Shown here: positions 2,432 to 28,158 of the stretch, one piece after another
How the letters are laid out: each line of letters opens with the position of its first letter
Numbering within the stretch: the first letter of the stretch is position 1
Assembly (NCBI RefSeq): GCF_000315625.1
Contig: NW_005434637.1
Span: 48,505 to 112,504, forward strand
From: Guillardia theta CCMP2712
Taxonomy: Eukaryota; Protista; Cryptophyta
Reading direction: 5' to 3'
Length of the DNA stretch: 64,000 nt
Notes under the pieces: model-generated
The model's database searches: none
The model's input: only the letters and a program-made list of their open reading frames with translations
Told to the model about the DNA's origin: nothing
Translations under genes and position numbers: made by a program

Positions 2432-3202
2432 TCAGCTTTGCTCTACCCTCATGTCCGGTTTGTGCTGGCACATGTCCTGAGGGAGTTGACCGAGTTGGTT
2501 CTTGATCACGCAGAGCTGCGGGTAATGTCGACAGAGCAACTCAGCGGACTTGACATCTCCGAACTTGATGACAGCATGCAGGCACGTGTCCCCAAGGGCA
2601 TCTTTCACTTTGGGATCAGCGTTGCGACCGCACAAGAGCGACAAGACTTGGTAAGCTCGCGGCGACAAGGCTGCCCAGTGAAACACTGTCCTCCCCCTCT
2701 TATCCCTTGCGCACAGATCGGTTCCATCCTCCACCAGAAACCGTAGAGCTTCCACCGATCCCCTCCAGGCCGCAACCATCGCTGGGGTCCTCCCGGCATC
2801 ATCGGCCTCTGTCAGTCCATGCAGCCTCGAGTATGGCAGCAGACCGCGAGCAGCAGCTTCAACCAAGTCGACTTGGTTGGAAGCGGCGGCATGATGAAGG
2901 CACAGGCAGGTGTGGGTACACCATCGATCCTTCTTGTAGGACACATATGCCTCGTAGCTGCTCCCGTACCCCAGCGGCGTTCCGTCCTCCACATGCGCCA
3001 GTTTCTTGCCGTTGCCCCTCCCCTTCCCTGACTGACCTGCGCCAGAGTTGCCGTCGAGAACGCTGAAGGATCTGCTTGGGGGACGAGACCTGCTGCTCCT
3101 GACATCGATCGCAAAGTCTCCGACAGGCATGGCTTCAGCATCAAGACGCCATGTCCGCTCACTGAGCAAGAAGCAGCGACGAGACGGTGAACAAGGTAGC
3201 AA
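2432..3202 (-). CDS. Ankyrin-repeat protein (spliced; true ends uncertain)
   Basis: Ankyrin motifs GRTPAMVAAWRGSVEALRFLVEDGTDL, GRTVFHWAA and GDTCLHAVIKFG..AELL in the 256-aa ORF. Confidence 0.85.
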   Translation of the reverse strand: MLPCSPSRRCFLLSERTWRLDAEAMPVGDFAIDVRSSRSRPPSRSFSVLDGNSGAGQSGKGRGNGKKLAHVEDGTPLGYGSSYEAYVSYKKDRWCTHTCLCLHHAAASNQVDLVEAAARGLLPYSRLHGLTEADDAGRTPAMVAAWRGSVEALRFLVEDGTDLCARDKRGRTVFHWAALSPRAYQVLSLLCGRNADPKVKDALGDTCLHAVIKFGDVKSAELLCRHYPQLCVIKNQLGQLPQDMCQHKPDMRVEQS

Positions 3203-3398
3203 AGAGCCCGTGTCAGTTATGAGCCTAGAGCAGGCAAGCAGTGAACAAGGAGAGGAGCGAGCAAGAGGAGTTGATACGCCATGGAAAATTCGGGAGGGGA
3301 AGAATGTGGCAGGTTAACCGAAATAACGTCAGGGACCTACTGCTGGTCGGGGAGTTCGAGAGCGTGAGGGAGGGTATGATGATGGGAACGAGCGTGTT

Positions 3399-4080
3399 AT
3401 AAGAGACGTGCTTGATATGATATGTGATGTGCCATAAGAGACGTGCTTGATATGATTGATGTGTTATAAGAGACGTGCTTGATATGATATGTGATGTGAT
3501 ATAAGAGACGTGCTTGATATGATATGTGATGTGATATAAGAGACGTGCTTGATATGATATGTGATGTGATATAAGAGACGTGCTTGATATGATTGATGTG
3601 TTATAAGAGACGTGCTTGATATGATATGTGATGTGATATAAGAGACGTGCTTGATATGATATGTGATGTGATATAAGAGACGTGCTTGATATGATTGATG
3701 TGCCATAAGAGACGTGCTTGATATGATATGTGATGTGATATAAGAGACGTGCTTGATATGATATGTGATGTGATATAAGAGACGTGCTTGATATGATTGA
3801 TGTGATATAAGAGACGTGCTTGATATGATATGTGATGTGCCATAAGAGACGTGCTTGATATGATATGTGATGTGATATAAGAGACGTGCTTGATATGATT
3901 GATGTGTTATAAGAGACGTGCTTGATAGGATATGCGATGTGATATAAGAGACGTGCTTGATATGATATGTGATGTGCCATAAGAGACGTGCTTGATATGA
4001 TTGATGTGATATAAGAGACGTGCTTGATATGATATGTGATGTGATATAAGAGACGTGCTTGATAGGATATGTGATGTGTC
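3399..4080. repeat. Minisatellite, 20 copies of 35/32-bp units with core ATAAGAGACGTGCTTGATA
   Basis: Core starts counted at 3399, 3434, 3466, 3501 ... 4011, 4046. Confidence 0.97.
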
Positions 4081-4480
4081 GGATGAGATGTGTTATCATA
4101 TCCCATGTATCATAGGAGATGTGCATCGTCAGGTTTTACATGTTGTTTTAAGATGTCTATCTGGATAGTTTGAAGGACGAGGCCCAACAAAAGTCCTGAC
4201 ATGTAGATTATTTCCTTCAAAGGCTCCTTTCGACTAAAAAGGCGACAGTTTACAAAGATTAAGAACGACAATGAGTGCGGGGGGATTGAACCATCTGTGG
4301 TGAGCGATGAATGAACATTCTGCATTTTGTCACAATGCATGAACATGTGCTTAGTGTACAATAATTGAACATGCTATTAAAATCTGCAAAAACACTGGGG
4401 CAATCTCAGTCTCAAGTTTCAGATCTGTGGATCAGAATCAGAGTTTCCTTTCAACAATTGTACCACCTGCACCCAATCGG

Positions 4481-7400
4481 TCAGGATATGACTAAACAAC
4501 ATCTAGGCAAGACATGTTCACCAGCAGTCAGCAGCATAATCCTATCTATCGTCTTGGAATAGTTTCCTCGCGATTCAGGTCCAGACGTCATCGGCTTGTG
4601 GAGACATCTCAAGCACGCCCGGTCAAAGATCCTCGCATAGTCCATGTCTTTGTTTCCTGGCTGCAAATCATCGAGAGATTCATAGAAGAACCTTGAGAAG
4701 CTTGTAGCTGTTTCATCATGAACTTTGCCTTTCCAGCAAATCACGTGCTTCACTCCTCGGTCCACCAGCTGCTTTCCCATGCTTTCAGACTGACAGGCGT
4801 TGAGGACAACACACTCCACCGAAGACTTCGACCGCGACCCTCCGGCCTGTACGGCTATCACGTCTACGACCTCTAGAGGCTTCTTGTAGTCAAACTCAGT
4901 CTTGGTTCCTTCTTTCAACCACCAAAAGCCATTCGTCTGATCGCCATGTCCTGAAAGATGGATGATCTTGATATTCCGGATGCTGCAGATACCCATGTAA
5001 CGAACAAAGTTTTCAAAAGTCGGCTGTGGGTAGATGCGAATATCGAACATCGCATTCATGGTTGTGTCCTGCATGATGTTTGCTTCTTCAAAAGGATCGA
5101 TGTTTTCAAGCTCGTCCCTGAGAAGGGTCGTAAGCATATCTTTTCTATCAGTATTACTCTCCTCGTTCAATTTGTTCTCTATTTTCGTCGTGAGAATGGA
5201 AACATTGATATTCCTCTTCACGAAGAAAGCAAGCACGCCCCATTTGTTGGAAACAAGCTGTTCATGCAGAGGTCTAGCACTCGCAACCTCTCTTGCCTCA
5301 TCAAACGTACTCGTCCTACACGAAAGTTTCCAAATTGCCTGATGAGGATCATCAAACACATCGGCAAACACCTGCTGCATCTCGTTGGCATCACAAAAAC
5401 GATCTCTGGGGTCTTTCTTCAAGGCTGTCTTGAGAAAGATGTTCATCGCTGCGCCACAACCAGGGATCTGCTGGAAAGGCTGTCTGCGCACAGCAGTGAA
5501 GAGCTCAAGGACGTCGTGTGAGTAGAAAGGATTTCTTCCTGCCGCCATCTCGTACAGCACAACCCCAGCTGACCAAACGTCCACCCGTGCATCCAGCTGC
5601 GGATCGCCGCGGCACTGCTCGGGGCTGAAGTATTGCCAGGTTCCAACGAACTGACCCGTGCGCGTCAAAGTCTCGTTATAGTCCTGATGCTTGGAAGACC
5701 CAAAGTCGATGAGAACAACTCGGCAGACGTCAGCGTGCGGGAAGGAACACATGATGTTGGAAGGTTTGAGGTCGCGATGAATGATTCCCATTCGATGTAG
5801 AAGAGACAGTCCCTCCAGCATCTGACCGCCGATCGTCTGCACCATCTCCTCACCAAGCTGTCTGCACTCCCCGTCCTCTGAGGTTTGCATGATCTCCTTC
5901 AATGACTGCCCTTCTACAAACTCCATCACAATCGCAAAAGGCTCTACAAGACAGTCAAACATCTTGACAATGTTGGGGTGTTGAAGTTGTTGCAGAGTCT
6001 TCAGATTCTGGTACTCTCTCTCGTCTGGCCTATTGCAGACTTTGACAGCAAACTTTGATTGAGACCCCTCTGCTTGAGCAAGGTAGACAATTCCTTGTCC
6101 TCCCCTTCCTATGAGACCAAGCACATCAAAACCAGGAATCGTCACGTTTGTTGGTTCCTGTCGACTCTGATTGAGATGCCCACCCAGCCGCTTCACAGGA
6201 GGCGAACAATACCTCAAAACCTCGTCCAAGTCGAGATCCTGAAAGCTTCCGGCGGAACTCTTAATCCACAACAACTCGAGCTTTCTCCGGACGTACAATC
6301 GACAAGCGAGTGATTGCAAGAAAGAGTTGACAAAGCAAACAGTTCGCACGAAGGCCCGTCGCCTTGTACTCGTTGACGAGGACACATTGATGCAGATGAG
6401 CTTACTCTCGTCTGCTGGATCACCGACATGCACAACCTCATACATGACTGTGGGGTGAGGGAGCTCGGCGATCCCATAGATCACTCCCTGTGAGCTCAGA
6501 CTGAGGCCTGGAGGTAAAGGATTTTTGTGCAGCTCAAGCTTTCCGTCGACCATGGCTGATAGAGGCTTCACCCGCCATCCCGGCAGCATGCTTGTGGCAT
6601 ACAAGTACAAGTCACTGATGTCAGTCGTCCTCATCCAGCCTTCTTCTGCAGCACCCCAGCTGACTTCCAGGTCAAGCTCCTGCACTTCTGATCCACTCGA
6701 CGTGATTCTCATGCGCCCGAGCGTCGGACGACATTTTGACGCAGGACAGTGTGCGACCGTTAAGACGAGCTGATCAGAGATCAGCAGCTCGTGCCGAAGC
6801 GAACTCATCACAGCTTGACAGGCCACCAGACACGGGGCGATACAAACCTCGTCTTCGAACCTGATTGAGAACGTTTCAGGCTCAACCGCCAAGATGTCAG
6901 GGATGTCGGGTAGCCTCATGTTCTTGCCGTAACTCGCACCTCTGATGTGCGCATACTTGATGGAGCTGAAAGGCAGAGCAAGCTCGCCGAGAAGTTCCGA
7001 CACCGTCAGAAACAGGCGGGTGCGAATGTGCTGCTGCCCGTTGGCGTGTAGGAAGATAGCGTCACAGACGGCTGGCAAGGAGGTGAGAATGGCACGAGGG
7101 CTCAAACTTCCTCGAATAGTCCCGGACGAGGCATCGAGCTGAAGGTCCCCGGGAAGCTGCGAGAGGACGAGGAACGATCCTGTGAGGTTGGCAGTCGCGA
7201 TCCCATCCTGCACTTGCCCCACAAAGGTCCTCAAGTGAGTGGCAGAATTACAGACAGATACTTGAGACTCAAGCAGGTCTAACCTCATATACCGGAAGAC
7301 ATCTCGGACGTTTGACTTTCGTCCTTCCCCTGGCGTCTGTTGAGAGATTTGAATCCTCGCGGAATGGTGAACATCTTCTCGGAGCATCAGCGCAGGGAGG

Positions 7401-10400
7401 GAAGGAGAGCGACTTGGCATGATGCGTCTGCTCCCACTGCCCAAACTCGATGGCGAGATTCGCATCCTCAGAAAGCAGGAGCAAGAACCAAACTCGTTGT
7501 GTGCACGGACGCGGATCTCAAACTCGCCGTCTTGGAGCGGAAACCCGTAGAGACAGCCACTCTCTTCGTCAATGAAGAGGCCAGGGGGCAACGCAGTCTC
7601 AGCTGAGAACCTTGGCAGCGGATAACCACAAGCATCTAGCCTTGCCATCGCTTGCACATGAGTCTTCGTCTTAACTGTTTCTGTTCCCAGCACTTGAAAC
7701 GTTGGGTGCGGTTGCTCGTCGATTATGTCAACTGAGAGATCGCTGGTCAGAACCCCGTCCTCGGCGACCTTGACAGCTGTGTAACGGTATCCAAGGCACT
7801 TGACCGAGATTGATCCGTACATGCTGCTCTGAAACGATTCAAACCATCGCCAAACAACAAACGCTAGACCAGCAACCAGAGCAATGTTGAATGGTCCAAA
7901 CAAGTAATATTCAGATACAGGATATAATCCGATGTAATCACATACAACGATGGCAGAAGGTATGATGGGTGTCAACAGGTATAGCAGGAAACGCATGTGA
8001 CCATTAGGAAGTTTCCCACCAGAAACGTCTGATAGCCGCGAAGAATACTCGATGATGTCGGTAGACGCATCCTTAATCTTCAAAGTTCGCTCGACGAGCT
8101 TTCGACGGCCGGAAGTTCCCTTCTTATGTGGAGGTCTAGTTGAATGCCGCACGTAAGAACCCAGCTGCGCCGGGGCTCGATTCACAAACTTATGACCATG
8201 AGGGTGACGTGACATTCGACGGCATTCGAACTCATAGTAACATTGCATGCAGAGCATCGGAGAACATCTTCCCTTGCGAATGCAAGTCTCGCAGATCATA
8301 AATTCAGTGCTTTGCTCCATACACCACGAACATTGTACATTGCCGGAGATGTCGCATTGCTTGAAGAGCTGTGCCTCGTTCATAAGGATGTACCCGTCGA
8401 TATTCTCGTAAGTAAGATTGGAAGGCGAACGGGGAAGAGGATCGATGAACACTCTGACTGATGTCATAGCGATGCCAAGAGGATTGACAGCTGCGATAAG
8501 AACTGTAACAAAGCTCTCTTCTTTCTTGCACAACTTACACGATGCTTGAAAGATCAGATCGCCGGTCTTTGCGTCGAGGGAAACGTACGGCAACGACTGG
8601 GAACTTCTTCCAAGGAGGAAGATGGGAGCCGGATAGACATCTCCTTCACTTGACTCAACTTGCAAGACGATTGTTTCTGTCATCCCTTGAAATAGAAAGA
8701 CGTTATTGCATCGAATCCCATTCCGCACGTAGCGGAAGCGACCTGGACGTGTTCCTGCTGTTGTTGGACTCAATACAGACAGGTCTATTCTTGACTCAGA
8801 GTGTTTGCGCCACTCACTTGCAGTCCAGCAGACTTGACATGATTTGTCTCCTGAGCAAACACAACACTGAAACTTCTCCATCTCTGCCATGATCATGAAA
8901 AAACAGATGACGGCAATAAATGGCAAACCAATTAAGTTCAGACGAATTATCAGCACCAGGATTGCATCTGTTTTGTTCCAATAAGGCAGCGAGTGATAAT
9001 AGCCCAACGACATGATAAAGAGCATGACTAAAACGATTAAGATGATCAAAGGATACTGCATGTGCTTGGCAGTGTTGTCGGACAACAGAACTCTCCTCAA
9101 ACCAAAAATTACAGACCTGCCTGAGAATTCAGACCACGGAACAAACGGTTTCACCTTGAAATTCCCTCCGTCATGCACTCGTTTGAAATATCGTCCGCAG
9201 ACAAGACTCCATGGAAGATTATTCCTTTCACCACATGTCGAACATGCTGCTCGCTGTCCTGCATTTGAGCACTTCAACATCACAACATCCTTCACGCAAA
9301 TGCTTTCCAAAGTCCCGTCGTGACGAACGTGTCGCTGAGTTCTCTCTACTATACGTTCCTTGTAACATGAAATGCAGAGTGACATTCCACAAGAATTGCA
9401 TCTCATCCTTCCACTCCCGTCAGGAATCATCCAAACAGAGGGAAACAGGCGCATCGAGATGAATAACAAAAGACCCACCATGAATGGCAGAGCAAACACA
9501 ATTCGAAGAAGGAGGCTTTCTTCTCTAACTCCACATCGCATTAAGTTCTGTTCACACACGGCCTCTCCACGTTCCATGGATTTTCTGCAAGAATTCAGCT
9601 TGTTACAAAGTGCCGATCGCCGTCCATTACAGTAAAACAATGAATATGAATGAGAAAACCCATCTTTGCACCTCAAAGAACAAGTTTTCATCTCGGCGTC
9701 TCCATACCCATGGACGACATTCGGTCCAAAATATTTATCGATGTCGGGACACCGGCGACAGAAAGAAGTAGTCGAGTAACACGTGAGATCTTCTTGTAGT
9801 TGTAGCACATCAGATGATGTGTAAGAGCACACGAAGGGTAGGGAGGTGTGATTGCAATCAGACGAGAAGTATGAGCCTGAATAAGGTCGCAAGGAAGTGC
9901 AACCCGGTTCTAAACCACTCAAGTCACTCAGAGTTGAGAGTGAAGACCCGTCAGACCAGCTCACTCGATTGGTTTCTGTCTGAGCCCCTTGGGCCTCAAC
10001 GCGCAATCCAATCCAAACATCCTTCACGTCGCGAGCCAACTCATTTATGCGGGACACTTCACTGACATGCCGAATCGAGGCAAGATGCCCGCCCTGCCCG
10101 ACGCAAAATGATTCAGCTTCCATCCAAGATCGTTGCGACAGGTGCAATGAGAACCTTCGGTAGACTTGTCTTGGAGCTTGTGGGGAAGCTGAAGGATCAG
10201 CCAGGCAGACACTGCCTGCATCGTGTCGTAGATAGCATCTCCTAGCAGAGGGACTGAAACAAAATGCATCTCGATTGTTACTTCTCGCGGATGAAAGGCA
10301 CATACTTACGAGGGATTTCTCGCCCAACTCAGTATCAAAATATTCAGTTTGCAGATCTATTGAGTTTGGCTGCAGACAACTGAAATTACGTTCAATCTTT

Positions 10401-11224
10401 GGACTCAAATAACTTCCTTCTGGACACTTGCAGTAGTCAAGACCATCCTTTGTAGTTTTCCCGTCATTGCAGTACAGGCAAGCGCTACTGTACTTCACGT
10501 AGAGAAGAGACGGTTGCGCGCTCTCTGAAGGTTGAGGCTCCCAAAACCTACTGACAACACGTTTGGAGAGGCAAGTTGTGCTGTACATGCATGTCCGTCT
10601 TAAGTTGACATCTGAAAACACACTGAAGCAGCGGCAGGTCTTTTCAGCATTGCATGTGTCCACACAATCTTGCAAATTTCCTCGGTAGGGAGTAGCAAAT
10701 GCAGCAGCATTTTTGTCTAGAACTGTATGGTCCATAACTACATAACCAAACAATGTCGTAGTGTTTACATGACCTTCACACCTTCCTGTCTCGTCGATGC
10801 TTATCAGCTCTTCGCACTTCTTAGAATCTCGTGTCGATTCGAACATCTTATTTGCGCACTGACACGACTTGGTACTGCTCTTCCTGCTCCACACACCTGT
10901 GCTCACAAGCGAGACGTTTGCACACGCCCTGATGCACGTCTGCTGGATTGTGGGGATGGAGTTGTCGACTTCAACATCCATGGTCGGGTACCAGCAAGAG
11001 CTGTAGCTTGAAGGCCCGCAGGTGAGACAAGGATTGCAACCTCCCTTCACTTCGTCGAATCCAGGTAGGCACAACCATGTACATGTCAGGGAAAACGACG
11101 AGTTTCCCTCCCAGAAAGCATTGGACGGAAGTTGTGAACAGTTTGTTTCACTCGCTGCAATGATGTAATGGCTCAGCGTCACGAGAATGCAGAAAATGAC
11201 AGGCTCCTTGTGATTAACCATCAT
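4481..11224 (-). CDS. Receptor-like protein: signal peptide, Cys-rich/PAN-like and C-type lectin ectodomain, 5 TM, He_PIG-like repeats, Zn finger, IQ-like motif, Ser/Thr kinase, CHAT caspase-like domain
   Basis: Single ORF of about 2250 aa with first ATG at 11224. CTL: SWMEAESFCVGQGGHLASI..WIGL..WSDGS..LPFVC. Kinase: GRGGQG, AVK, HRDLKPSN, DFG, GTWQYFSPEQ, DVWSAG. CHAT: IIHLSGHG and VVLNACQS. He_PIG-like: LPPGLFIDEESGCLYGFP. Confidence 0.9.
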   Translation of the reverse strand: MMVNHKEPVIFCILVTLSHYIIAASETNCSQLPSNAFWEGNSSFSLTCTWLCLPGFDEVKGGCNPCLTCGPSSYSSCWYPTMDVEVDNSIPTIQQTCIRACANVSLVSTGVWSRKSSTKSCQCANKMFESTRDSKKCEELISIDETGRCEGHVNTTTLFGYVVMDHTVLDKNAAAFATPYRGNLQDCVDTCNAEKTCRCFSVFSDVNLRRTCMYSTTCLSKRVVSRFWEPQPSESAQPSLLYVKYSSACLYCNDGKTTKDGLDYCKCPEGSYLSPKIERNFSCLQPNSIDLQTEYFDTELGEKSLVSMCLSSARSNNRDAFCFSPSARRCYLRHDAGSVCLADPSASPQAPRQVYRRFSLHLSQRSWMEAESFCVGQGGHLASIRHVSEVSRINELARDVKDVWIGLRVEAQGAQTETNRVSWSDGSSLSTLSDLSGLEPGCTSLRPYSGSYFSSDCNHTSLPFVCSYTSSDVLQLQEDLTCYSTTSFCRRCPDIDKYFGPNVVHGYGDAEMKTCSLRCKDGFSHSYSLFYCNGRRSALCNKLNSCRKSMERGEAVCEQNLMRCGVREESLLLRIVFALPFMVGLLLFISMRLFPSVWMIPDGSGRMRCNSCGMSLCISCYKERIVERTQRHVRHDGTLESICVKDVVMLKCSNAGQRAACSTCGERNNLPWSLVCGRYFKRVHDGGNFKVKPFVPWSEFSGRSVIFGLRRVLLSDNTAKHMQYPLIILIVLVMLFIMSLGYYHSLPYWNKTDAILVLIIRLNLIGLPFIAVICFFMIMAEMEKFQCCVCSGDKSCQVCWTASEWRKHSESRIDLSVLSPTTAGTRPGRFRYVRNGIRCNNVFLFQGMTETIVLQVESSEGDVYPAPIFLLGRSSQSLPYVSLDAKTGDLIFQASCKLCKKEESFVTVLIAAVNPLGIAMTSVRVFIDPLPRSPSNLTYENIDGYILMNEAQLFKQCDISGNVQCSWCMEQSTEFMICETCIRKGRCSPMLCMQCYYEFECRRMSRHPHGHKFVNRAPAQLGSYVRHSTRPPHKKGTSGRRKLVERTLKIKDASTDIIEYSSRLSDVSGGKLPNGHMRFLLYLLTPIIPSAIVVCDYIGLYPVSEYYLFGPFNIALVAGLAFVVWRWFESFQSSMYGSISVKCLGYRYTAVKVAEDGVLTSDLSVDIIDEQPHPTFQVLGTETVKTKTHVQAMARLDACGYPLPRFSAETALPPGLFIDEESGCLYGFPLQDGEFEIRVRAHNEFGSCSCFLRMRISPSSLGSGSRRIMPSRSPSLPALMLREDVHHSARIQISQQTPGEGRKSNVRDVFRYMRLDLLESQVSVCNSATHLRTFVGQVQDGIATANLTGSFLVLSQLPGDLQLDASSGTIRGSLSPRAILTSLPAVCDAIFLHANGQQHIRTRLFLTVSELLGELALPFSSIKYAHIRGASYGKNMRLPDIPDILAVEPETFSIRFEDEVCIAPCLVACQAVMSSLRHELLISDQLVLTVAHCPASKCRPTLGRMRITSSGSEVQELDLEVSWGAAEEGWMRTTDISDLYLYATSMLPGWRVKPLSAMVDGKLELHKNPLPPGLSLSSQGVIYGIAELPHPTVMYEVVHVGDPADESKLICINVSSSTSTRRRAFVRTVCFVNSFLQSLACRLYVRRKLELLWIKSSAGSFQDLDLDEVLRYCSPPVKRLGGHLNQSRQEPTNVTIPGFDVLGLIGRGGQGIVYLAQAEGSQSKFAVKVCNRPDEREYQNLKTLQQLQHPNIVKMFDCLVEPFAIVMEFVEGQSLKEIMQTSEDGECRQLGEEMVQTIGGQMLEGLSLLHRMGIIHRDLKPSNIMCSFPHADVCRVVLIDFGSSKHQDYNETLTRTGQFVGTWQYFSPEQCRGDPQLDARVDVWSAGVVLYEMAAGRNPFYSHDVLELFTAVRRQPFQQIPGCGAAMNIFLKTALKKDPRDRFCDANEMQQVFADVFDDPHQAIWKLSCRTSTFDEAREVASARPLHEQLVSNKWGVLAFFVKRNINVSILTTKIENKLNEESNTDRKDMLTTLLRDELENIDPFEEANIMQDTTMNAMFDIRIYPQPTFENFVRYMGICSIRNIKIIHLSGHGDQTNGFWWLKEGTKTEFDYKKPLEVVDVIAVQAGGSRSKSSVECVVLNACQSESMGKQLVDRGVKHVICWKGKVHDETATSFSRFFYESLDDLQPGNKDMDYARIFDRACLRCLHKPMTSGPESRGNYSKTIDRIMLLTAGEHVLPRCCLVIS

Positions 11225-11403
11225 GGTTTCACTAGCTACATCGCTCACTCGAATTGGTAGTTATTCTTTCGAGCATCTCACGAAAAGACTGGGACAACAC
11301 AACTGTATGGATAGCAAGGAAGAAAACTTGCAGAAAGGCAGGATCGAAGGGAGAGCTAAGGTTAAGTAAGGGAAGAGGGAGAAGAAGAAGAAGAATGGGG
11401 GCA

Positions 11404-12869: not shown

Positions 12870-15425
12870 TGACTCGTGAACAGCTCCAGATGAAGATCTT
12901 GATATGAAAGCTGTCTGATCAAACCTTTGATTGATGAGAACCGTGGAGCATGTGAAGGGATCATATGCTTGTGTGGTGTTGCATTTCAGATCATCTCTTT
13001 GCTGAGCTATGCTGATGCTCCGTGTCAACGGCTTTTTGGACATTTCAAAGAATCAAACCTCAAGCTGGTGTAACGTTCATGGTTACGTAGTTGACACAGA
13101 TTGAGACTTGATATATTCAAAATACACTCATATGTTCATCTTGTGTCGACATGCTTTGAAGGTTTTCCCTGCTCACTGTGACGATGAGAGGGAGATAGAT
13201 TGATTGGACAAGGATCGACTTGGAACAAGGTTTCTCATGGATCCCACCTGCTTCAAGTCAGCTTCATGCATGAAAGGAAGAAGAAGTTACCCCTCTCATC
13301 TTGAACAAGAGCCTCCATGTAGGCAGCGCTTTCTTGTATGACTCTTTCTCTCTCAAATGTCGTGCCTCCTGCTCCACCGGTTCAAGTCGGCCAAAATTTT
13401 CAGAAGGAAAGGGTAAAGGTCAAGAAAGTAGAAAGGGGGCCAAGGAGTGAAGCACTGAATCTTGAAAGGAACCTCAATCTTCTGCTTCTCCATATGCTCG
13501 GCGTACTTTTCCTGTTTGCAGCACATCAGCTTCAGAGCTACTTGGGTCAAAGAAGCACTGACTTGAAATGTCGAGCTGATCACAGAGATCGGCAAAGCAA
13601 CCATAACAACCCCAGCAACGCACGCCATGCTGAGAGGAAGAGTTAGCAATACATGGAGTTTGTTGCAAACTATCTTCACCTCCCAAACAATCTTCCAGTG
13701 TCAGTGACAGGAGTCATGTCCCCGTAACCGATAGTGCAGAGGGTTATGACAGCCCACCACATACTGCAGGCGAGATGAGCTTCAAAAGTATCCCCTCCTC
13801 TCCCTATAGCTCACCTGTGAGGGATCGACAGAAATGGCTCTCCGTATGGATTCGCAGCATTGTCCTCTGCGAGAATGTTTCATGCATAGAAGGCAAAACT
13901 AAGGGATGTACCAGCATAAAAAACAATTGCTGCAAACAAGATGACCAATATGATGAAGCAAAAAAGGGCCTTTCGAAGCACATCCTCAGTTTCATGAACA
14001 CGACAGATCCAAGCATTGGACCTGGCTAAGTTCATTCCTTGCTGCAATGGCTGTCTTGCCGAGAACCTGATGATAGGAATCAAAGATGTGCAAACATAGA
14101 AAGTTTTTGAGGATTACTTGAAGCCCGTCTGAGTGCCTTGCAAGCTTGAAGACTCGGAGAATCCTCAGCACTGCATCGATCCAGTATCAGGCGGACAACT
14201 GTGAGAGTTTGCATGCAAAACCTTTCAAGACCTTTGATGCTTCTGCTGCTGGGAAAATCAAGGTGATCCAGGTTGGAAGGATGGACAAGAGATCGATTAT
14301 GTTCAGTGGGCGAAACACGAACTTCCTCTTGTTCTGGTTCACTAAGAGCCGTGAGAGATACTCAAAAGTGAAGGCTGAGACGAAACCGACGTCCACAAAC
14401 TCGAAGGTTGACTGCAGCTGGTCGTTCTTTGCCAACTGCGGAAGAGTCTCGACGCACAAGACCACCACAGACGCCACGACCAGGATCAAGGACGTCATCG
14501 AGATGAACCAGGCAAGAGTGCTCGACTTGGGCTCTTCCAGCAACGCATACAAAGTTGCCCGGAACCCAGCAGAAGGTCTTCCATCTTCCTCGCTGTTGAA
14601 AGATTGTCGGTACAGGGCCAAGAATCCATCCAAACCCGGGATGGGCGGATCTGCCTCGTGCATCTTGAAGTACAAGAGCTCATTCTGCCAGACTTCTGAA
14701 GCAATGTGAGGAGGTTTGACTGGAATGAAACCATCGCGGTAGGAGTTGACGATCTCGACAGCAGCAAACGGATGCCGATCAAGAAATATGAAACCTTTGC
14801 GGAATAGATCGTGATTGGGATTCCTGATCATATCTGAAAGCAATGTTCCCGGATAGCGACGCAGGTACTTCTCATACGTTATGCATACCATCCCCCCGCT
14901 GTTGATGCAAATCTTCCTCCCTAATCCTCCGTTCGCCATCATCTTTCGCGCCACCTCCGAGATCATAGTATCCCAATTCTCTTTCGCTCGAAGTTCCTTT
15001 TGAAGTTGCGCGTGGGCCGCAGGATCAGATTCAGCTGCCTGGTCTGTTCGCATTCCACGATGCCTTTCAGCTCTGTGGGCTGAATGGCTATCGACATGTT
15101 CATAATGACTCATCGGCGCTCCCCACACCAGCGTCTTCTCATAAGAAGAGGTGGTCGAGCAACTTGCCTCACTCGCTCCGTGACTTGACATGCGAGCGAA
15201 AGACTCAACGTCACTGACGTGCACATCTTTTGCTGAAAGGGAGATGGCCTGCGGGAATCCCATGCTGTTTGGATCCTCCGTCGAATCTATCGCGGGGACT
15301 GTTGGCAAAAAGCGCCGGAGGGAGCCGCTTGATTGCCATCCATGGTCGATCAGCTGCTGGAATGTTTCATTCTTCGGTGCTCCTGCTCCCTCAGGAGGAT
15401 CACTCGATTCTCTTTGGTCTGTCAT
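12870..15425 (-). CDS. Voltage-gated K+ channel (6TM Kv) with N-terminal T1/BTB tetramerisation domain; multi-exon, 3' end approximate
   Basis: T1: [34 protein letters not shown]1-S3 lie in ORF 14187-15425. S4 [22 protein letters not shown] (about 14117-14240, spliced). Pore [17 protein letters not shown] (about 13710-13760). S6 [17 protein letters not shown]. Confidence 0.93.
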
Positions 15426-21120: not shown

Positions 21121-23055
21121 ATGCCCTTGTTCGCATGGACGGCGTCGGCGGCAGCAACTGAGTTTGTAGATGAGACTGGAACAGGATTTTCTGAGCTGGG
21201 AGGTGACAAGACAGGTGACACATGGTTGACATCATTTTCGAGGCGCTTCTCTCAGCTTGTCAATGGGCATTTTCGGAGTCACCCAGATCCTCATAAGTCA
21301 GATAGGATGAGGATTGCGACTGACTTACTAGAAGAAAATGTCGGTGATGTCAAGATATCAGAATGGCAAGCAACCATGATATTGTTCAAGAGCTCGTTCG
21401 GAATTGGCATGTTGAGTCTACCCTACGCGTTTTCAAAGTCGGGCATGGTTCCAGGGATGATTGCAATCTGCATCATCGCCAAAATTACCAATTTCTCTAC
21501 TAAGCTTCTGGTCTGGAACAAGAGAAAATTGCAGAGTGGAACCAACAGCGTGCTTGGGATCCCAGACATCGCCTACCTGTGCTGGGGTTGGCCTGGCCTG
21601 GCGGTCGCAAGCGCTGTCATCATCTGTTGTCAGGTGGGAAACTGCATCGCGTACACTATCTTCCTCGCTCTCACCACCTCCTCGCTGCTGGAGGAGTCAA
21701 GTGCTGGCTTTGGCATCCTGCAGGAGAGCGAATCACCTTTCATCCCCCTCGCACTGTGCTGGGCGGTGCTTTTCTCTTTCCTGGTGCAGATGAAGGAGCT
21801 CAAGACTTATGCTCCTCTTTTATTCACAGCACAGATAGCTCACATCACAGCCGTTATCACAATCATCTTTTACGGCCTTTTACATGATCACGTGTGCGGG
21901 GAGGTAGAAGTGAAAGTATTCTGCAGCGTCAGAGTTGGAACGCATTGGGAGACGTTTCCAATCTTCCTGGGGATTGCAGTCTTTGCTGTAGAGGGCATTC
22001 CCATGGTTCTAGCGATCGAAAATTCAATGGCAACCCCAGAACGGTTTGAGACTGCATTCGATAGAGCACAGATTTGTCTAGTTTCTTGCTTCCTGGCATT
22101 CGGCGTGATGGGATATTGGCTTTATGGTGATAACACGAAGAGTGTGATTGTTTTGAACGTGTTGGGAACAACCGGGCTCATGGTAAAGGCGCTGCTCTGC
22201 CTGGTCATATCTCTGTCTTACCCCCTCCAATTCATGCCAGCTGGGGAAGTGTTGAAGGCTATCTCGGAGAGCTCTATCTCGAGGAGCATTTACGACGCCG
22301 TTACCCTACGCTACTTCCACGACATGTCGTATCTGGAGTGGAAAGAAAAGTTCTGGATGGTCTTGAAGGTTTGCGCTGTCCTTGGCGGTGCCTGGGTTGC
22401 TATTATTTTCCCCCATTTTGGTCACTTCCTTTCCATATTGGGCTCCATAACGTTTTCTCTCATCACCTTCTTCCTCCCTCCTCTGTTCTACTTGCAGACC
22501 TTCCACTGGCAAGTCAGCAATCGCATGTTGGCAGCTTGTCTGCTTACCTCATGCTTTGGTGTCGCTGTCACATGCGTCGGCCTCTGGAGCAACCTGCTGG
22601 CAACAAGTCACCTGCAGGGGATCGAGCATTCTCCTCCAAACCCGACAAGTCCCGAATTCCAGCAGGCACGGAAAGTCTACAAGGTTGCAGAAGGACAGAT
22701 AGCTCGACAAATCCCCAAGGATATGAAGCATGCATTGATCAAGTACGCCAAGCAAGCTGGGAACAAAGCCATCAAGCACATGATTGAGGACCATGATATC
22801 TCAGGAACAGTCAAGCAGAAGATGGTTTCGAACAAGTCGATGGCGCATGCTGAGGCGGAGCCTCCTTCAGGCACTGCCAACAACTCGGAAGAAGCTGGAG
22901 TCCAACCTGCTCATGCGCTGCACATGGCGCAAGAGGCCCATGCACCTCCCAGGATCATCAACTTTCCATCTCACAGCAGCAACGGCAGCACGAAGGAGAC
23001 GGAAGAGACCGGCGGCCAGCGAGTGGTCTATCGTCCGATTGGGTTGAAGCATTAG
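21121..23055 (+). CDS. AAAP/Aa_trans family amino-acid transporter (SLC36/AVT3-like)
   Basis: LFKSSFGIGMLSLPYAFSKSG, FPIFLGIAVFAVEGIPMVLAIENSM and SYPLQFMP motifs; about 11 TM segments; 644-aa ORF. Confidence 0.93.
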   Translation: MPLFAWTASAAATEFVDETGTGFSELGGDKTGDTWLTSFSRRFSQLVNGHFRSHPDPHKSDRMRIATDLLEENVGDVKISEWQATMILFKSSFGIGMLSLPYAFSKSGMVPGMIAICIIAKITNFSTKLLVWNKRKLQSGTNSVLGIPDIAYLCWGWPGLAVASAVIICCQVGNCIAYTIFLALTTSSLLEESSAGFGILQESESPFIPLALCWAVLFSFLVQMKELKTYAPLLFTAQIAHITAVITIIFYGLLHDHVCGEVEVKVFCSVRVGTHWETFPIFLGIAVFAVEGIPMVLAIENSMATPERFETAFDRAQICLVSCFLAFGVMGYWLYGDNTKSVIVLNVLGTTGLMVKALLCLVISLSYPLQFMPAGEVLKAISESSISRSIYDAVTLRYFHDMSYLEWKEKFWMVLKVCAVLGGAWVAIIFPHFGHFLSILGSITFSLITFFLPPLFYLQTFHWQVSNRMLAACLLTSCFGVAVTCVGLWSNLLATSHLQGIEHSPPNPTSPEFQQARKVYKVAEGQIARQIPKDMKHALIKYAKQAGNKAIKHMIEDHDISGTVKQKMVSNKSMAHAEAEPPSGTANNSEEAGVQPAHALHMAQEAHAPPRIINFPSHSSNGSTKETEETGGQRVVYRPIGLKH

Positions 23056-23887: not shown

Positions 23888-24040
23888 GAGGTCAAGAACG
23901 GCTGAAGGAAGACAAGAGAAGCAAGGAGAGGAAACGAGGGAGCAAGGTTTCGTTTTAAGTTTTACACACACATAAAAAGAACTTATGTGAGCTCACATAA
24001 AAAGAGACTTCCTTGATTCAGGAAGGACCACCCTAAGGGT

Positions 24041-24112
24041 CGCCGCGTCTGGGAATTGAACCCAGGTCTCCCGCGTGACAGGCGGGGATACTGACCACTA
24101 TACTAACACGGC
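24041..24112 (-). tRNA. trnD-GTC: tRNA-Asp (anticodon GTC)
   Basis: Reverse complement GCCGTGTTAGTATAGTGGTCAGTATCCCCGCCTGTCACGCGGGAGACCTGGGTTCAATTCCCAGACGCGGCG: 72 nt, paired 7-bp acceptor stem, A and B boxes, CTGTCAC anticodon loop. Confidence 0.97.
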
Positions 24113-24461
24113 AGTCAGAAGCGCAGGTTGTTGCGCTCGCCTTGCACGTGTGCAGGGCCCTAATCATTATATACTAGACCCCGACTGCACAACGCACGAT
24201 CATCGGTGTGAGTGTCACTGCGGTGCCAGCGCCCACGTCACACTGCCCGACCAGGCCGGCCCGGGGTGCGACGGCCGGGCCACACGGGGGTCCGTACTAC
24301 CGTACGGCCGCGGCGCCGGGCAGACTCTCACTCACTGCGGCCTGCCCGTGCCACCGCCGGGCACGTGACTGACCGAATCCGAGTTGGGGACCAGCGACGG
24401 CGGCGCGGGAGTCAATCATGGTTGTCAACTTCAGCGCAAAAGGGTCCCAGGGAGACTCACA

Positions 24462-25329: not shown

Positions 25330-28158
25330 ATGCAACAACATCTTGGGCTTCGATTTGGGTTGCTACTTTCTGTGTGCATGCAGATGGTCTCAGCATCTGA
25401 GACACTAGGGATTCTAGATCAAATCAAAAAGGCTGGCGGTGAAAGAGATGCTACCTTGATGATTTACATTCCCGCCGGATTTGCGATCTTGTTCTCTGTG
25501 TATCTCTTCTTCCGCGTCAAGGCAGTATCTATCCTCAAGACGGAGGGAGCATCGGCTGCATCCTTCGAAGAGCTGAAAAACTGTTACGAGACCATCCAAG
25601 CTGGAGCCAAGGCGTTCCTTTGGGCTGAGTACCAAGTGTGCACTATCTTCGTGATCCTGTTTGCGGTGCTTGTTTTTATCCTCACTTCGCGTATCCCCAC
25701 CTTGTCTGCGACGGGAGACTCGTACGAATGGAAGTGGAAGATTGGAGGGCTGACCTGCGCTTCTTTCCTGGTCGGAGCCTTCACTTCCATCCTGTCCGGA
25801 TATATCGGCATGATGGTTGCAGTGTTTGCAAATGGCAGAACCACAGTTGCTGCTCTCGCCGACGGAGGAGCTGGCTGGACAGCAGCCTTCAACGTTGCCT
25901 TCCGCTCGGGAGCGATCATGGGCTTTTCCAACTGTGGTCTGGCTCTCATCATTCTATACGGTCTGTGCCAGATCTACCGCGACGTGTTCACAGACATCAT
26001 CGATGGCAAGAGGTACATCCAGTACACTCAGCTCTTCGAGTGCGTGTCTGGCTTCGGTCTCGGTGGGTCGGCGATCGCCTTGTTCGGAAGGGTAGGAGGA
26101 GGAATCTTCACCAAGGCTGCCGATGTCGGAGCGGACCTCTCTGGGAAAGTGATCGGGTTGGGAGATGGCAAGAAGCTCGACGAAGATTCTCCGTACAACC
26201 CTGCGGTCATTGCTGACAACGTCGGTGACAACGTCGGTGATGTTGCGGGAATGGGAAGCGACTTGTTTGGCTCTCTCGGAGAAGCTTCCTGTGCTGCGAT
26301 GCTGCTGGGTGCAGCAATCGGAGAGATCAGCACGGCTGGATGGTCAGCGCTCATGTATCCGCTCTACATCTCCACCATCGGAATCTGCGCATGTCTTGTG
26401 ATGCACTTCGTCGCTACTGATATCTGGCCTGTGCGATGCGAAACGGACATCGAGAAGGTCCTCAAGATTCAGCTGCTGGGAACTGCTATAATCATGTCTG
26501 GCATCATGTACCCTGTAACCGACGGCTTCCTGCCTAACAGTATGACCATCGACGGCGTCACTCGTCTTGTCACTTCGGACAATGTCTACGGTTGCGTGTT
26601 GTTCGGCATCTGGGCTGGCACTATCATCGGCTTCATCACCGAGTACTTCACCTCGCACACCTACAAGCCTACTCGCGATGTAGCCAAGGCTTGCGAGACT
26701 GGAGCAGCCACCAACATCATCTATGGCATCGCTCTCGGGTACCTCTCCTCTATCATCCCCGTCGGCCTCATCGCAGGAGCCGTATACTTCTGCTTGAAGA
26801 CCACTGGCTTGTATGGCGTAGCTTGCGGTGCTCTTGGCATGCTCTCGACCCTCGCAACGTGCCTCACCATCGACGTGTATGGTCCCATCTCTGACAACGC
26901 GGGAGGCATCGCTGAGATGGCCGAGTTCCCCCCCAACGTGCGCGACAAGACTGATGCTCTTGATGCTGCCGGAAACACGACGGCAGCCATTGGCAAGGGC
27001 TTCGCCATCGGGTCTGCGGCCCTTGTGTCCGTCTCCTTGACCGGCGCATTTGTTGCTCGATGCTCCTTCTCCATGTCGGCAGCCAGCAAGCTCAACGAGC
27101 ATGGGGTCAACCTCATGTCTGCCGTCGTCTTCGCTTTCCTCATCTTCGGTGCGAACATCCCGTACTGGTTCTCAGCTCTTACCATGAAATCTGTCGGAGA
27201 AGCCGCAAACTCGATGGTGCGGGAGGTGGCGAGGCAGTGGGCGGAGATCCCTGGGCTAAAAGACACAGCTTCGCTCGACTTTGACACGCGTGCTGAGAAA
27301 CGTGCAGCTGGAGAGAAGCTGGCGACGCCCGACTACCAGAGGTGCATCGCCATTGCCACAAACGCCTCGCTGAAGGAGATGATTGCTCCTGCTGCCCTGG
27401 TCGTCCTCTCCCCCATCATCGTCGGCTCTCTCTTCGGAGTAGAGGCGGTGGTGGGTCTTTTGGCGGGCGCCATGTCCTCGTCTGTGCAGCTTGCTATTTC
27501 CATGTCCAACACAGGAGGAGCATGGGACAACGCAAAGAAGTTCACGGAGAAGGGAGGACTGAACGGATGGTTCATGTTCAGAGATGGATCCAACGTCAAT
27601 GAGGATGAGTTCAAGAGGAAAGCTGCCGACTACAACGGAGACGAGGTTCTAGTCGTGCCTGATGCGGCCAGGGGAAGCTACTTTCCTCCAAGCATCCCTC
27701 CTTCCGTTGTGGCAGCCCCGATGCCGGGCATGGCGATGATGGGAGCCCCGGCCATGAGCGCGCAGTACATCATGCCGATGACTTCGATCCCTGATGGGCA
27801 GATGCACGTCGTGATGGGAACTGCGTTCGGAGGGGAGGAGAAGCCTCAAAGGCCCTTCAAGGACTGGCTGAACGAGCTCTCCAAGACCGACCCGGCCAGG
27901 CACAAGCGCATCATGCAGGGCGACGAAGGCGTGAGGACGGTAGACGGCAGGACCGTTGTCTATGCAGGCAAGAAATCCAACGTGCATGCTGCTGCGGTTG
28001 TGGGCGACACGGTGGGAGATCCTTTCAAGGACACGTCAGGACCAGCTCTCAACATCGTGATGAAGCTGATGGCTATCATCTCGGTTGTCTTTGCTGACTT
28101 CTTCATGAGCATCAACCATGGCAATGGAGCCTCGCATGCAGGCAATCTGATCTATTAA
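25330..28158 (+). CDS. Membrane-bound H+-translocating pyrophosphatase (V-PPase/AVP1-like, K+-dependent type)
   Basis: Motifs GGGIFTKAADVGADLSGK, DNVGDNVGD, GPISDNAGGIAEM, GNTTAAIGKGFAIGS (Ala at the K+-dependence site), GGAWDNAKK and GDTVGDPFKDTSGP; N-terminal signal-like peptide. Confidence 0.97.
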   Translation: MQQHLGLRFGLLLSVCMQMVSASETLGILDQIKKAGGERDATLMIYIPAGFAILFSVYLFFRVKAVSILKTEGASAASFEELKNCYETIQAGAKAFLWAEYQVCTIFVILFAVLVFILTSRIPTLSATGDSYEWKWKIGGLTCASFLVGAFTSILSGYIGMMVAVFANGRTTVAALADGGAGWTAAFNVAFRSGAIMGFSNCGLALIILYGLCQIYRDVFTDIIDGKRYIQYTQLFECVSGFGLGGSAIALFGRVGGGIFTKAADVGADLSGKVIGLGDGKKLDEDSPYNPAVIADNVGDNVGDVAGMGSDLFGSLGEASCAAMLLGAAIGEISTAGWSALMYPLYISTIGICACLVMHFVATDIWPVRCETDIEKVLKIQLLGTAIIMSGIMYPVTDGFLPNSMTIDGVTRLVTSDNVYGCVLFGIWAGTIIGFITEYFTSHTYKPTRDVAKACETGAATNIIYGIALGYLSSIIPVGLIAGAVYFCLKTTGLYGVACGALGMLSTLATCLTIDVYGPISDNAGGIAEMAEFPPNVRDKTDALDAAGNTTAAIGKGFAIGSAALVSVSLTGAFVARCSFSMSAASKLNEHGVNLMSAVVFAFLIFGANIPYWFSALTMKSVGEAANSMVREVARQWAEIPGLKDTASLDFDTRAEKRAAGEKLATPDYQRCIAIATNASLKEMIAPAALVVLSPIIVGSLFGVEAVVGLLAGAMSSSVQLAISMSNTGGAWDNAKKFTEKGGLNGWFMFRDGSNVNEDEFKRKAADYNGDEVLVVPDAARGSYFPPSIPPSVVAAPMPGMAMMGAPAMSAQYIMPMTSIPDGQMHVVMGTAFGGEEKPQRPFKDWLNELSKTDPARHKRIMQGDEGVRTVDGRTVVYAGKKSNVHAAAVVGDTVGDPFKDTSGPALNIVMKLMAIISVVFADFFMSINHGNGASHAGNLIY

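Follow-up and report, generated by a model that had tools for sequence, protein, structure and literature searches.

Gene structure and transcription

The longest open reading frame (ORF) by far in the 64,000-nucleotide stretch of DNA analyzed here (the window; contig NW_005434637.1 of the cryptophyte Guillardia theta CCMP2712, positions 48,505 to 112,504) runs on the minus strand from 4481 to 11248 and comprises 2,255 codons, with its first ATG at 11224, from which all residue numbers are counted. The initial annotation of this DNA described an algal surface receptor in which a lectin, a kinase, and a CHAT protease are fused within one ORF and glycan sensing is coupled to phosphorylation and proteolysis. 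The assignment to an alga stands, the frame is intact throughout, and an open frame of 6.7 kb in DNA of ∼48% GC cannot be a product of chance.

Transcription was assessed by comparing four public sequencing runs with window positions 4200-10199. Run X1 (2014; 44 Mb of contigs) spans all of this interval in overlapping contigs that match the window exactly, and one of them, 5,637 nt long, extends from 5762 to ∼1.2 kb past 10199, i.e., beyond the start codon. A further X1 contig at depth 24 contains the sole joint seen in the interval, from 4463 to 4519 (cut +3), which skips 55 nt. The boundaries read from the sequence define a GT..AG intron of phase 1 at 4467-4521 on the minus strand, which contains the in-frame stop at 4481-4483. 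Because this GT..AG splice lies on the strand of the gene and is missing from the DNA run X11, where the intron is read through unskipped, we conclude that X1 contains spliced RNA of the receptor gene. Lectin, kinase, and CHAT domains lie in one intron-free stretch that is continuously covered by X1 contigs and appear to be transcribed as one unit, the overlaps between contigs not being strict proof of a single RNA molecule. Runs bearing a second species name gave patchy, low-depth pieces along the ORF.

The coding sequence therefore joins 11224..4522 to 4466..4438 on the minus strand, and its spliced translation has 2,243 residues and a single terminal stop. Coding exon 1 (4522-11224), supported by the open frame and the contig cover, encodes residues 1 to 2234 and the first base of the next codon, while the coding part of exon 2 (4438-4466) encodes (G)GTIVERKL and the stop codon TGA (4438-4440). 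Splicing alters only the last few residues: the spliced protein ends in ...LLTAGGTIVERKL and the unspliced ORF in ...LLTAGEHVLPRCCLVIS. Retention of the intron may give a second isoform ending in ...EHVLPRCCLVIS, a minor form that would be hidden in the Logan contigs. The read-through C terminus (AGEHVLP..) is closer to the conserved tail motif of the family (G-D/E-x-x-P) than is the spliced one. A bacterial contaminant or a gene-fusion artifact was considered as the source of this ORF and is ruled out by the spliced transcript, the eukaryotic neighbors (BTB-Kv channel, ankyrin, and H+-PPase), and the paralogs described below.

Domain organization and predicted topology

A Pfam scan of the whole protein, with matches kept above the curated cut-offs, identified four families, Lectin_C, He_PIG, Pkinase, and CHAT. 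All parts of the protein are encoded on the minus strand and follow one another from high to low coordinates. The protein begins with a predicted signal peptide of about residues 1-24 (11153-11224), recognized as a hydropathy peak with a hydrophobic core at residues 9-27; the N terminus of the paralog on contig C7 resembles a signal peptide more clearly. Cys-rich ectodomain modules follow at residues 25-345 (10190-11152), in which the cysteines are invariant across five family members. These modules include the stretch that had been called PAN-like, a reading that found no Pfam match at an E value of ≤10 and that retains one lead: in a language-model feature search with residues 140-345, the nearest named Atlas clusters were all PAN, at a score of 0.85, which is below the trust level of 0.9.

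The C-type lectin-like domain occupies residues 364-467 (9824-10135) and matches Lectin_C at 35.5-39.5 bits (cut-off, 22.6). Its WIGL motif and C-terminal cysteine pair are visible in all three collinear paralogs. When the ectodomain (residues 20-570) was searched against the protein database, the sole outside match was a fish PLA2R-like protein, and only in the lectin part.

A Kyte-Doolittle scan predicted, besides the start resembling a signal peptide, five membrane helices rather than one. Predicted helix 1 (residues 571-593; 9446-9514; peak, 2.61) has an equivalent in the paralog on contig C186 and is followed by loop 1 (residues 594-721; 9062-9445), which carries CxxC pairs, possibly zinc-ribbon-like, at residues 609, 617, and 661, and for which Pfam gave only subthreshold B-box, IBR, and zinc-ribbon matches. 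Predicted helices 2 and 3 (residues 722-742 and 755-780; 8885-9061; peaks, 2.46 and 2.58) lead into loop 2 (residues 781-1076; 7997-8884), in which a He_PIG-like stretch was seen by eye, Pfam found no match, and the cysteines form a zinc-finger-like pattern (CxxC-x9-CxxC-x10-CxxC...HxxxH). Predicted helices 4 and 5 (residues 1077-1095 and 1107-1125; 7850-7996; peaks, 1.87 and 1.80) appear as a paired peak in the C186 paralog as well. The odd number of helices would place the kinase and the CHAT domain on the side of the membrane opposite the ectodomain, so that the lectin-like domain is predicted to lie outside and both enzymes inside; the helix counts predicted for the C186 paralog (five) and for the metagenomic relative P0001 described below (three) are likewise odd. 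The zinc-finger-like CxxC pairs in both larger loops, which this topology places in the cytosol, fit such a location.

Between the last helix and the kinase lies a region of Ig-like He_PIG repeats, also predicted to be cytosolic (residues 1126-1690; 6155-7849). He_PIG reached 35.9 bits at residues 1209-1246 in the whole-protein scan and 41.6 bits, in three stretches, when residues 1126-1690 were scanned alone. The Ser/Thr protein kinase domain (residues 1701-1944; 5393-6124) and the C-terminal CHAT domain with its N-terminal helices (residues 1993-2234; 4523-5248; clan CD, caspase-like) complete the chain.

Kinase and CHAT domains

The kinase domain scores 162.6 bits against Pkinase, and all of its catalytic motifs are present: GRGGQG at residue 1706, AVK with Lys1728, HRD at 1816 (within HRDLKPSN), DFG at 1840, SPE at 1867, and DVWSAG at 1882. 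A complete Ser/Thr kinase had been placed at about 5360-6135, and the profile match agrees. The best database matches are Ser/Thr kinases of the bacterial type at ∼33% identity. The kinase is the part of the protein most conserved in the C186 paralog (68% identity), followed by the CHAT domain (59%), with 29-43% elsewhere. That these two domains are the best conserved among the paralogs fits both being working enzymes.

The Pfam CHAT family (PF12770) matches residues 2067-2186 with 27.2 bits in the whole protein, 31.8 bits in the tail alone, and 31.3 bits in a genome-wide scan (cut-off, 24). The motifs IIHLSGHG and VVLNACQS, from which a CHAT protease was first proposed, are present, and the codons of their His (4946-4948) and Cys (4793-4795) lie exactly where the initial annotation put them. 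These encode His2093, the second His of HLSGHG, and Cys2144, the Cys of LNAC. When the last 298 residues were used as a query against 1.84 billion representatives, 451 relatives were returned, 93 of them at an E value of ≤1e-10. In an alignment of 41 sequences, Glu2047, Gly2092, and Cys2163 are invariant, and His2093, Asn2142, Cys2144, and Asp2170 are nearly so. The His/Cys dyad is kept in 40 of the 41, including all G. theta paralogs.

An AlphaFold2 model of the CHAT tail, built from this alignment, has a predicted local distance difference test (pLDDT) value of 83 and a predicted template-modeling (pTM) score of 0.82; it was made with the end of the unspliced ORF, and its last short strand is absent from the spliced protein. 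The model adopts a caspase/hemoglobinase fold in which His2093 comes after the strand at model positions 136-143 and Cys2144 after the strand at 189-193. Its closest solved structure is that of the characterized CHAT protease SAVED-CHAT (8tl0; VIA Z, 19.4; root-mean-square deviation, 2.6 Å over 188 residues; Foldseek E value, 1.4e-10). It is followed by C11 peptidases, legumain, caspases, and metacaspases at Z values of 10-12.5, or 8-12.5 when DdvA, Csx29, and separase are included. The sequence of 8tl0 was found by the family profile only (E value, 4e-20), a query with the tail sequence alone having returned nothing from the PDB. In the profile alignment, GHG and NAC fall on chain residues 355 and 402, which with a constant offset of 20 are H375 and C422. 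Double mutation of H375 and C422 abolishes the activity of SAVED-CHAT (bioRxiv 10.1101/2023.06.23.546230). The C-terminal domain is accordingly a CHAT domain, and the two residues originally named as its catalytic dyad, His2093 and Cys2144, align with a pair proven by mutation and are the predicted catalytic residues here. More speculatively, the acidic residues Glu2047 and Asp2170 may favor substrates with a basic residue ahead of the cleavage point, like those of metacaspases. A complex prediction with two copies of the tail scored 0.00 and gave no answer, speaking neither for nor against self-association.

A kinase-CHAT family in Guillardia theta and other eukaryotes

Profile searches of the G. 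theta genome identified five members of this CHAT subtype, the window gene included. The C186 paralog (2,157 residues) is full-length, collinear, and 42.6% identical overall, with the same five predicted helices. The C7 paralog is also collinear, most of the protein being represented by three in-frame blocks with one short break and a 270-nt stretch that was not retrieved. A third paralog, on contig C23 (173624-181099, minus strand), has a frame of 2,492 residues in which LRR, Roc, COR-A, and Ser/Thr kinase domains precede a CHAT-type tail with an intact His/Cys dyad; this protein is LRRK/ROCO-like and ends in a caspase-like protease. The fourth, GUITHDRAFT_136222 (XP_005836017.1; 1,546 residues; C19:300431-305068), combines a Cys-rich N terminus, predicted helices, He_PIG, and CHAT. 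The kinase-CHAT unit is shared by C186, C7, and C23, the last with LRR-Roc-COR in place of the ectodomain, but not by the C19 member, which is kinase-less. Four further G. theta loci, on contigs C21, C8, C79, and C55, gave fuller matches to the Pfam CHAT profile itself.

Relatives outside G. theta repeat parts of this order. An intronless sequence on a marine metagenome contig, P0001 (1,809 residues), has a Cys-rich ectodomain, three predicted helices, He_PIG, a kinase, and CHAT, and P0231 of the cryptophyte Baffinella frigidus shows the order He_PIG, kinase, and CHAT. The He_PIG region is thus common to P0001, P0231, and the C19 paralog, while P0001 and the C19 paralog are without a lectin domain. 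Among the best 150 representatives of the CHAT subtype, tallied with a procedure that included phmmer with the window protein's own domains, a kinase lies directly upstream of CHAT in 16, Roc-COR occurs in 8, and Roc-COR-TIR-CHAT occurs in one; most of the others are short fragments. Two metagenomic sequences, P0130 and P0271 (JGI and NCBI), carry Roc-COR-TIR-CHAT of the same subtype and look like environmental eukaryote sequences.

Bacterial relatives and comparison with known systems

Patterns derived from the catalytic core (an alignment of eight rows) and applied to genomes sampled at one per species recovered at least 542 relatives in bacteria. Identity is 27-37% in the 80 best loci, which were kept, and the hosts are mainly filamentous cyanobacteria, Saprospiraceae, Moduliflexus, and Thiomargarita. 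Pfam scans of ten relatives showed fusions with STAND-type or AAA ATPases, Roc-COR, or SIR2 in seven and pentapeptide repeats in one, with no detectable partner in the remaining two. The sampled architectures comprise CHAT-nSTAND1/NACHT, CHAT with NA-iREase1 and WD40, CHAT-AAA_35 (three times), CHAT-SIR2_2, Pentapeptide-CHAT, and EAD11-Roc-COR-CHAT, the last from a Lewinella metagenome-assembled genome and a bacterial counterpart of the C23 protein. Such bacterial CHAT fusions have been discussed in the context of NLR-like conflict systems in multicellular bacteria. They share with the window protein the short CHAT subtype and a similar logic of fusing sensor to effector; they differ in using a STAND or Roc NTPase as the switch and in being neither polytopic nor eukaryotic, and their functions are mostly predicted. 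The window protein itself has no NTPase domain in Pfam and is therefore not of the STAND or ROCO type.

SAVED-CHAT of Haliangium ochraceum, part of a type III-B CRISPR/CBASS hybrid, has HxxGHG and LNAC in common with the window protein as well as the aligned catalytic residues. Its activation is by sensor-driven oligomerization, CHAT proteases act in bacterial defense (bioRxiv 10.1101/2023.06.23.546230), and its operon also has a kinase (PCk). Unlike the window protein, it is soluble and bacterial, its SAVED sensor binds cyclic tri-AMP, it has no in-chain kinase, membrane part, or ectodomain, and the identity is only ∼16-19%. The TPR-CHAT protein of Craspase (Csx29), separase, metacaspases, and caspases share the fold and the His-then-Cys order of the dyad, but they belong to other families and have other regulators; the metacaspases of phytoplankton are small soluble enzymes (PMC3734836).

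In bacterial conflict systems, sensors of the C-type lectin fold are paired with CHAT, TIR, or kinase domains, and such combinations have already been proposed as conflict systems (PMC10907252). The bacterial lectin sensors diversified by diversity-generating retroelements differ from the present domain in being C-terminal and hypermutated (PMC10907252). Among eukaryotes, fungal CHAT proteases control gasdermins and are fused to repeats or kinase-like domains (PMC12881547). These fungal systems, which include S8 proteases, resemble the window protein as eukaryotic caspase-like CHAT proteases joined to a sensor part, in their case repeats, and sometimes to kinase-like domains. The fungal proteins act in regulated cell death from the cytosol and are encoded in a cluster with a gasdermin gene, whereas no such neighbor is conserved among the G. 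theta paralogs. Plant lectin receptor-like kinases (LecRLK), including the C-type LecRLK, and animal C-type lectin receptors likewise couple an extracellular lectin-type domain across the membrane to Ser/Thr kinase signaling. These are single-pass proteins with no protease, whereas the window protein has five predicted helices, Ig-like repeats predicted to be cytosolic, an additional CHAT domain, and a kinase nearest to the bacterial type, and it does not fit the plan of a single-pass lectin receptor-like kinase.

Our literature search found no paper joining Guillardia or cryptophytes with CHAT or describing a lectin-kinase-CHAT architecture, in agreement with the initial view that the architecture is uncharacterized. 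Lectin receptor kinases, CHAT proteases, fungal fusions of kinase-like domains with proteases, and bacterial combinations of lectin, kinase, and CHAT are already known. What appears to be new, with no description found for either, is a predicted eukaryotic polytopic membrane receptor with a lectin-like ectodomain, a kinase of the active type, and a CHAT domain of the active type, and a recurrent kinase-CHAT cassette in protists.

Interpretation and alternative explanations

We consider it highly probable that the architecture of this lectin-like/kinase/CHAT receptor and its expression are real. The transcribed nuclear gene of the cryptophyte G. theta encodes a receptor-like protein of ∼2,243 residues that is predicted to cross the membrane several times. 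The proposal that both enzymes are active and signal through clustering could go either way, and opinion is likewise evenly balanced on the full reading that joins this mechanism to the architecture. Modeled on receptor kinases, caspases, and SAVED-CHAT, the proposed mechanism would begin with a ligand, not necessarily a sugar, that binds the ectodomain and clusters the receptors, and the cytosolic kinases would then phosphorylate one another or the adjacent CHAT domain. The CHAT domain would be activated by induced proximity, as in caspases and the SAVED-CHAT filament, and might cleave the receptor itself, or other substrates, at a limited number of sites.

An output in defense or cell death is a tentative reading by association, rather less probable than not. 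It is nonetheless the likeliest type of output because the CHAT subtype is found in bacterial fusions with STAND or Roc-COR and in eukaryotic fusions with Roc-COR, TIR, and kinase domains. More speculative, and in our judgment unlikely, is the broader idea that cryptophytes, and probably other marine protists known from metagenomes only, own one-protein innate immune receptors in which a sensor (a lectin/PAN-like surface ectodomain or a cytosolic LRR-Roc-COR unit) is fused to a kinase-CHAT executioner cassette derived from bacterial NLR-like conflict systems, recognition of pathogens or grazers leading to caspase-like proteolysis and death without adaptors.

Several observations weigh against the preferred reading. 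The topology comes from a simple hydropathy scan from which sidedness is deduced, and it places the He_PIG repeats in the cytosol, whereas Ig-like domains of this kind are usually extracellular. An AlphaFold2 model of the ectodomain (residues 1-570) from an alignment of five sequences has a pLDDT of 35.6 and is unusable for judging a PAN or lectin fold. The C-type lectin assignment holds for the profile score, the WIGL motif, and the cysteines but not for the canonical calcium- and sugar-binding motifs EPN/QPD and WND, in place of which the window protein has EPG and SSD, with RSG at the first site in both paralogs. Canonical sugar binding is thus not supported, nor is the original proposal of glycan sensing, although a sugar could still be bound in some other mode; many C-type lectin-like domains lacking these motifs bind ligands other than sugars. 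On the side of expression, the RNA nature of X1 is deduced from the splice and not from the run record, and run X15 (raw reads), the sole run recorded as RNA, has hardly any reads within the ORF in the ∼6% of the run that was read; expression of the gene may be low or conditional. A tblastx comparison of the 10-kb flanks of three paralogs found no shared neighbor gene as a substrate candidate. Defense itself is suggested by guilt by association only.

These points bear differently on the alternatives. In the most direct form of the original proposal, the lectin would bind microbial or viral sugars and trigger phosphorylation and a caspase-like death, e.g., through cleavage of a pore-forming protein. 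The Lectin_C match above its cut-off, the gasdermin-activating fungal CHAT proteases (PMC12881547), the service of CHAT proteases in bacterial defense (bioRxiv 10.1101/2023.06.23.546230), and the pairing of C-type lectin sensors with CHAT, TIR, or kinase domains in bacteria (PMC10907252) are compatible with it. The missing sugar-binding motifs, at positions that are not conserved among the paralogs, and the status of the lectin domain as an accessory module of the family, given its absence from P0001 and the C19 paralog, make a glycan receptor decidedly improbable. No gasdermin (PF04598) was detected by profile in the G. theta genome either, a search that is uninformative since the control genomes equally gave none. 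Somewhat better placed, though still improbable, is a nonimmune surface sensor or adhesion receptor for cell-cell contact, mating, substrate, or environment, in which CHAT would mainly cut the protein itself and so release or switch off a kinase fragment. PAN-like, lectin-like, and Ig-like parts are typical adhesion modules, there would be room for cleavage sites in the long, predicted cytosolic stretch from the last helix to the kinase, no observation links the gene to infection, and its expression is detectable in ordinary culture-type runs. Against an adhesion role stands the company that the CHAT subtype keeps, since STAND-type ATPases, Roc-COR, SIR2, and TIR typify immune and conflict systems and not adhesion proteins.

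Many scaffold proteins are caspase-like or kinase-like (c-FLIP is an example, and Raptor is among the fold matches), and one of the two enzymes could in principle be noncatalytic, with CHAT serving oligomerization only or the kinase acting as a pseudokinase-like regulator. The intact kinase motifs, the retention of the His/Cys dyad in 40 of 41 relatives and all G. theta paralogs, and the position of these two domains as the most conserved parts of the protein render this very improbable. Weaker still is the case for an artifact, i.e., an ORF arising by chance or misassembly, a pseudogene, or distinct genes mistaken for one. It could draw on the DNA run X11 (2011), whose contigs, at depth ∼3, carry 1-nt deletions at 4279 and 9634, the latter of which would break the ORF, and on the failure of protein database searches to return the window protein, which masking or a different gene model may explain. 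The deletions are probably read errors; at 9634, an X1 transcript contig at depth 42 matches the window. With the 6.7-kb open frame, X1 transcript contigs identical to the window and free of other joints, two full-length collinear paralogs, and relatives beyond G. theta (P0001 and the Baffinella protein P0231) whose parts follow the same order, an artifact is extremely improbable.

The preferred reading, a clustering-activated receptor in which a kinase and a CHAT protease would act together, matters because little is understood of regulated cell death and immunity in phytoplankton, where work has so far focused on metacaspases. If both enzymes work, the protein would offer a testable link from surface sensing to caspase-like proteolysis in a unicellular alga, an example of bacterial conflict-system parts rewired in eukaryotes, and a compact system for examining mutual regulation between a kinase and a clan CD protease. 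Natural domain-swap comparisons would be available among the sister genes, namely, the C19 member without a kinase, the ROCO-kinase-CHAT protein, and the TIR-bearing relatives from the environment. Were the idea of one-protein immune receptors true, a unicellular alga would possess a membrane-anchored equivalent of inflammasome-like logic.

Genomic neighborhood

The neighboring ORFs are eukaryotic in kind, with ankyrin repeats, a BTB-Kv channel, an amino-acid transporter, and an H+-pyrophosphatase. Just downstream of the receptor gene lie two minus-strand ORFs (3225-4106 and 2432-3202); one adjoining ORF encodes ankyrin repeats. The ORF immediately downstream has a weak whole-protein Pfam match to Terminase_5 (E value, 2.4e-7), with no single stretch passing, and may contain repeated short helix-turn-helix-like motifs. 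An X1 contig spans 4394 down to ∼4035, which suggests that the transcript of this downstream neighbor may start very near the 3′ end of the receptor gene. Ordinary neighbors on the other side are a Kv-type channel exon with BTB_2 and Ion_trans domains (14187-15425, minus strand), an Aa_trans amino-acid transporter (21121-23055, plus strand), a tRNA-Asp (GTC) gene (24038-24113, minus strand), and the H+-pyrophosphatase ORF of 942 residues (25330-28158, plus strand). Farther along, between 36000 and 52000, the base composition is strand asymmetric, unlike in the remaining window, with a GC skew of +0.18 to +0.23 and down to −0.23, an AT skew of up to ±0.2, and a GC content of 55-57%; the skewed blocks alternate at 36-38 kb, 40-42 kb, and 44-52 kb.

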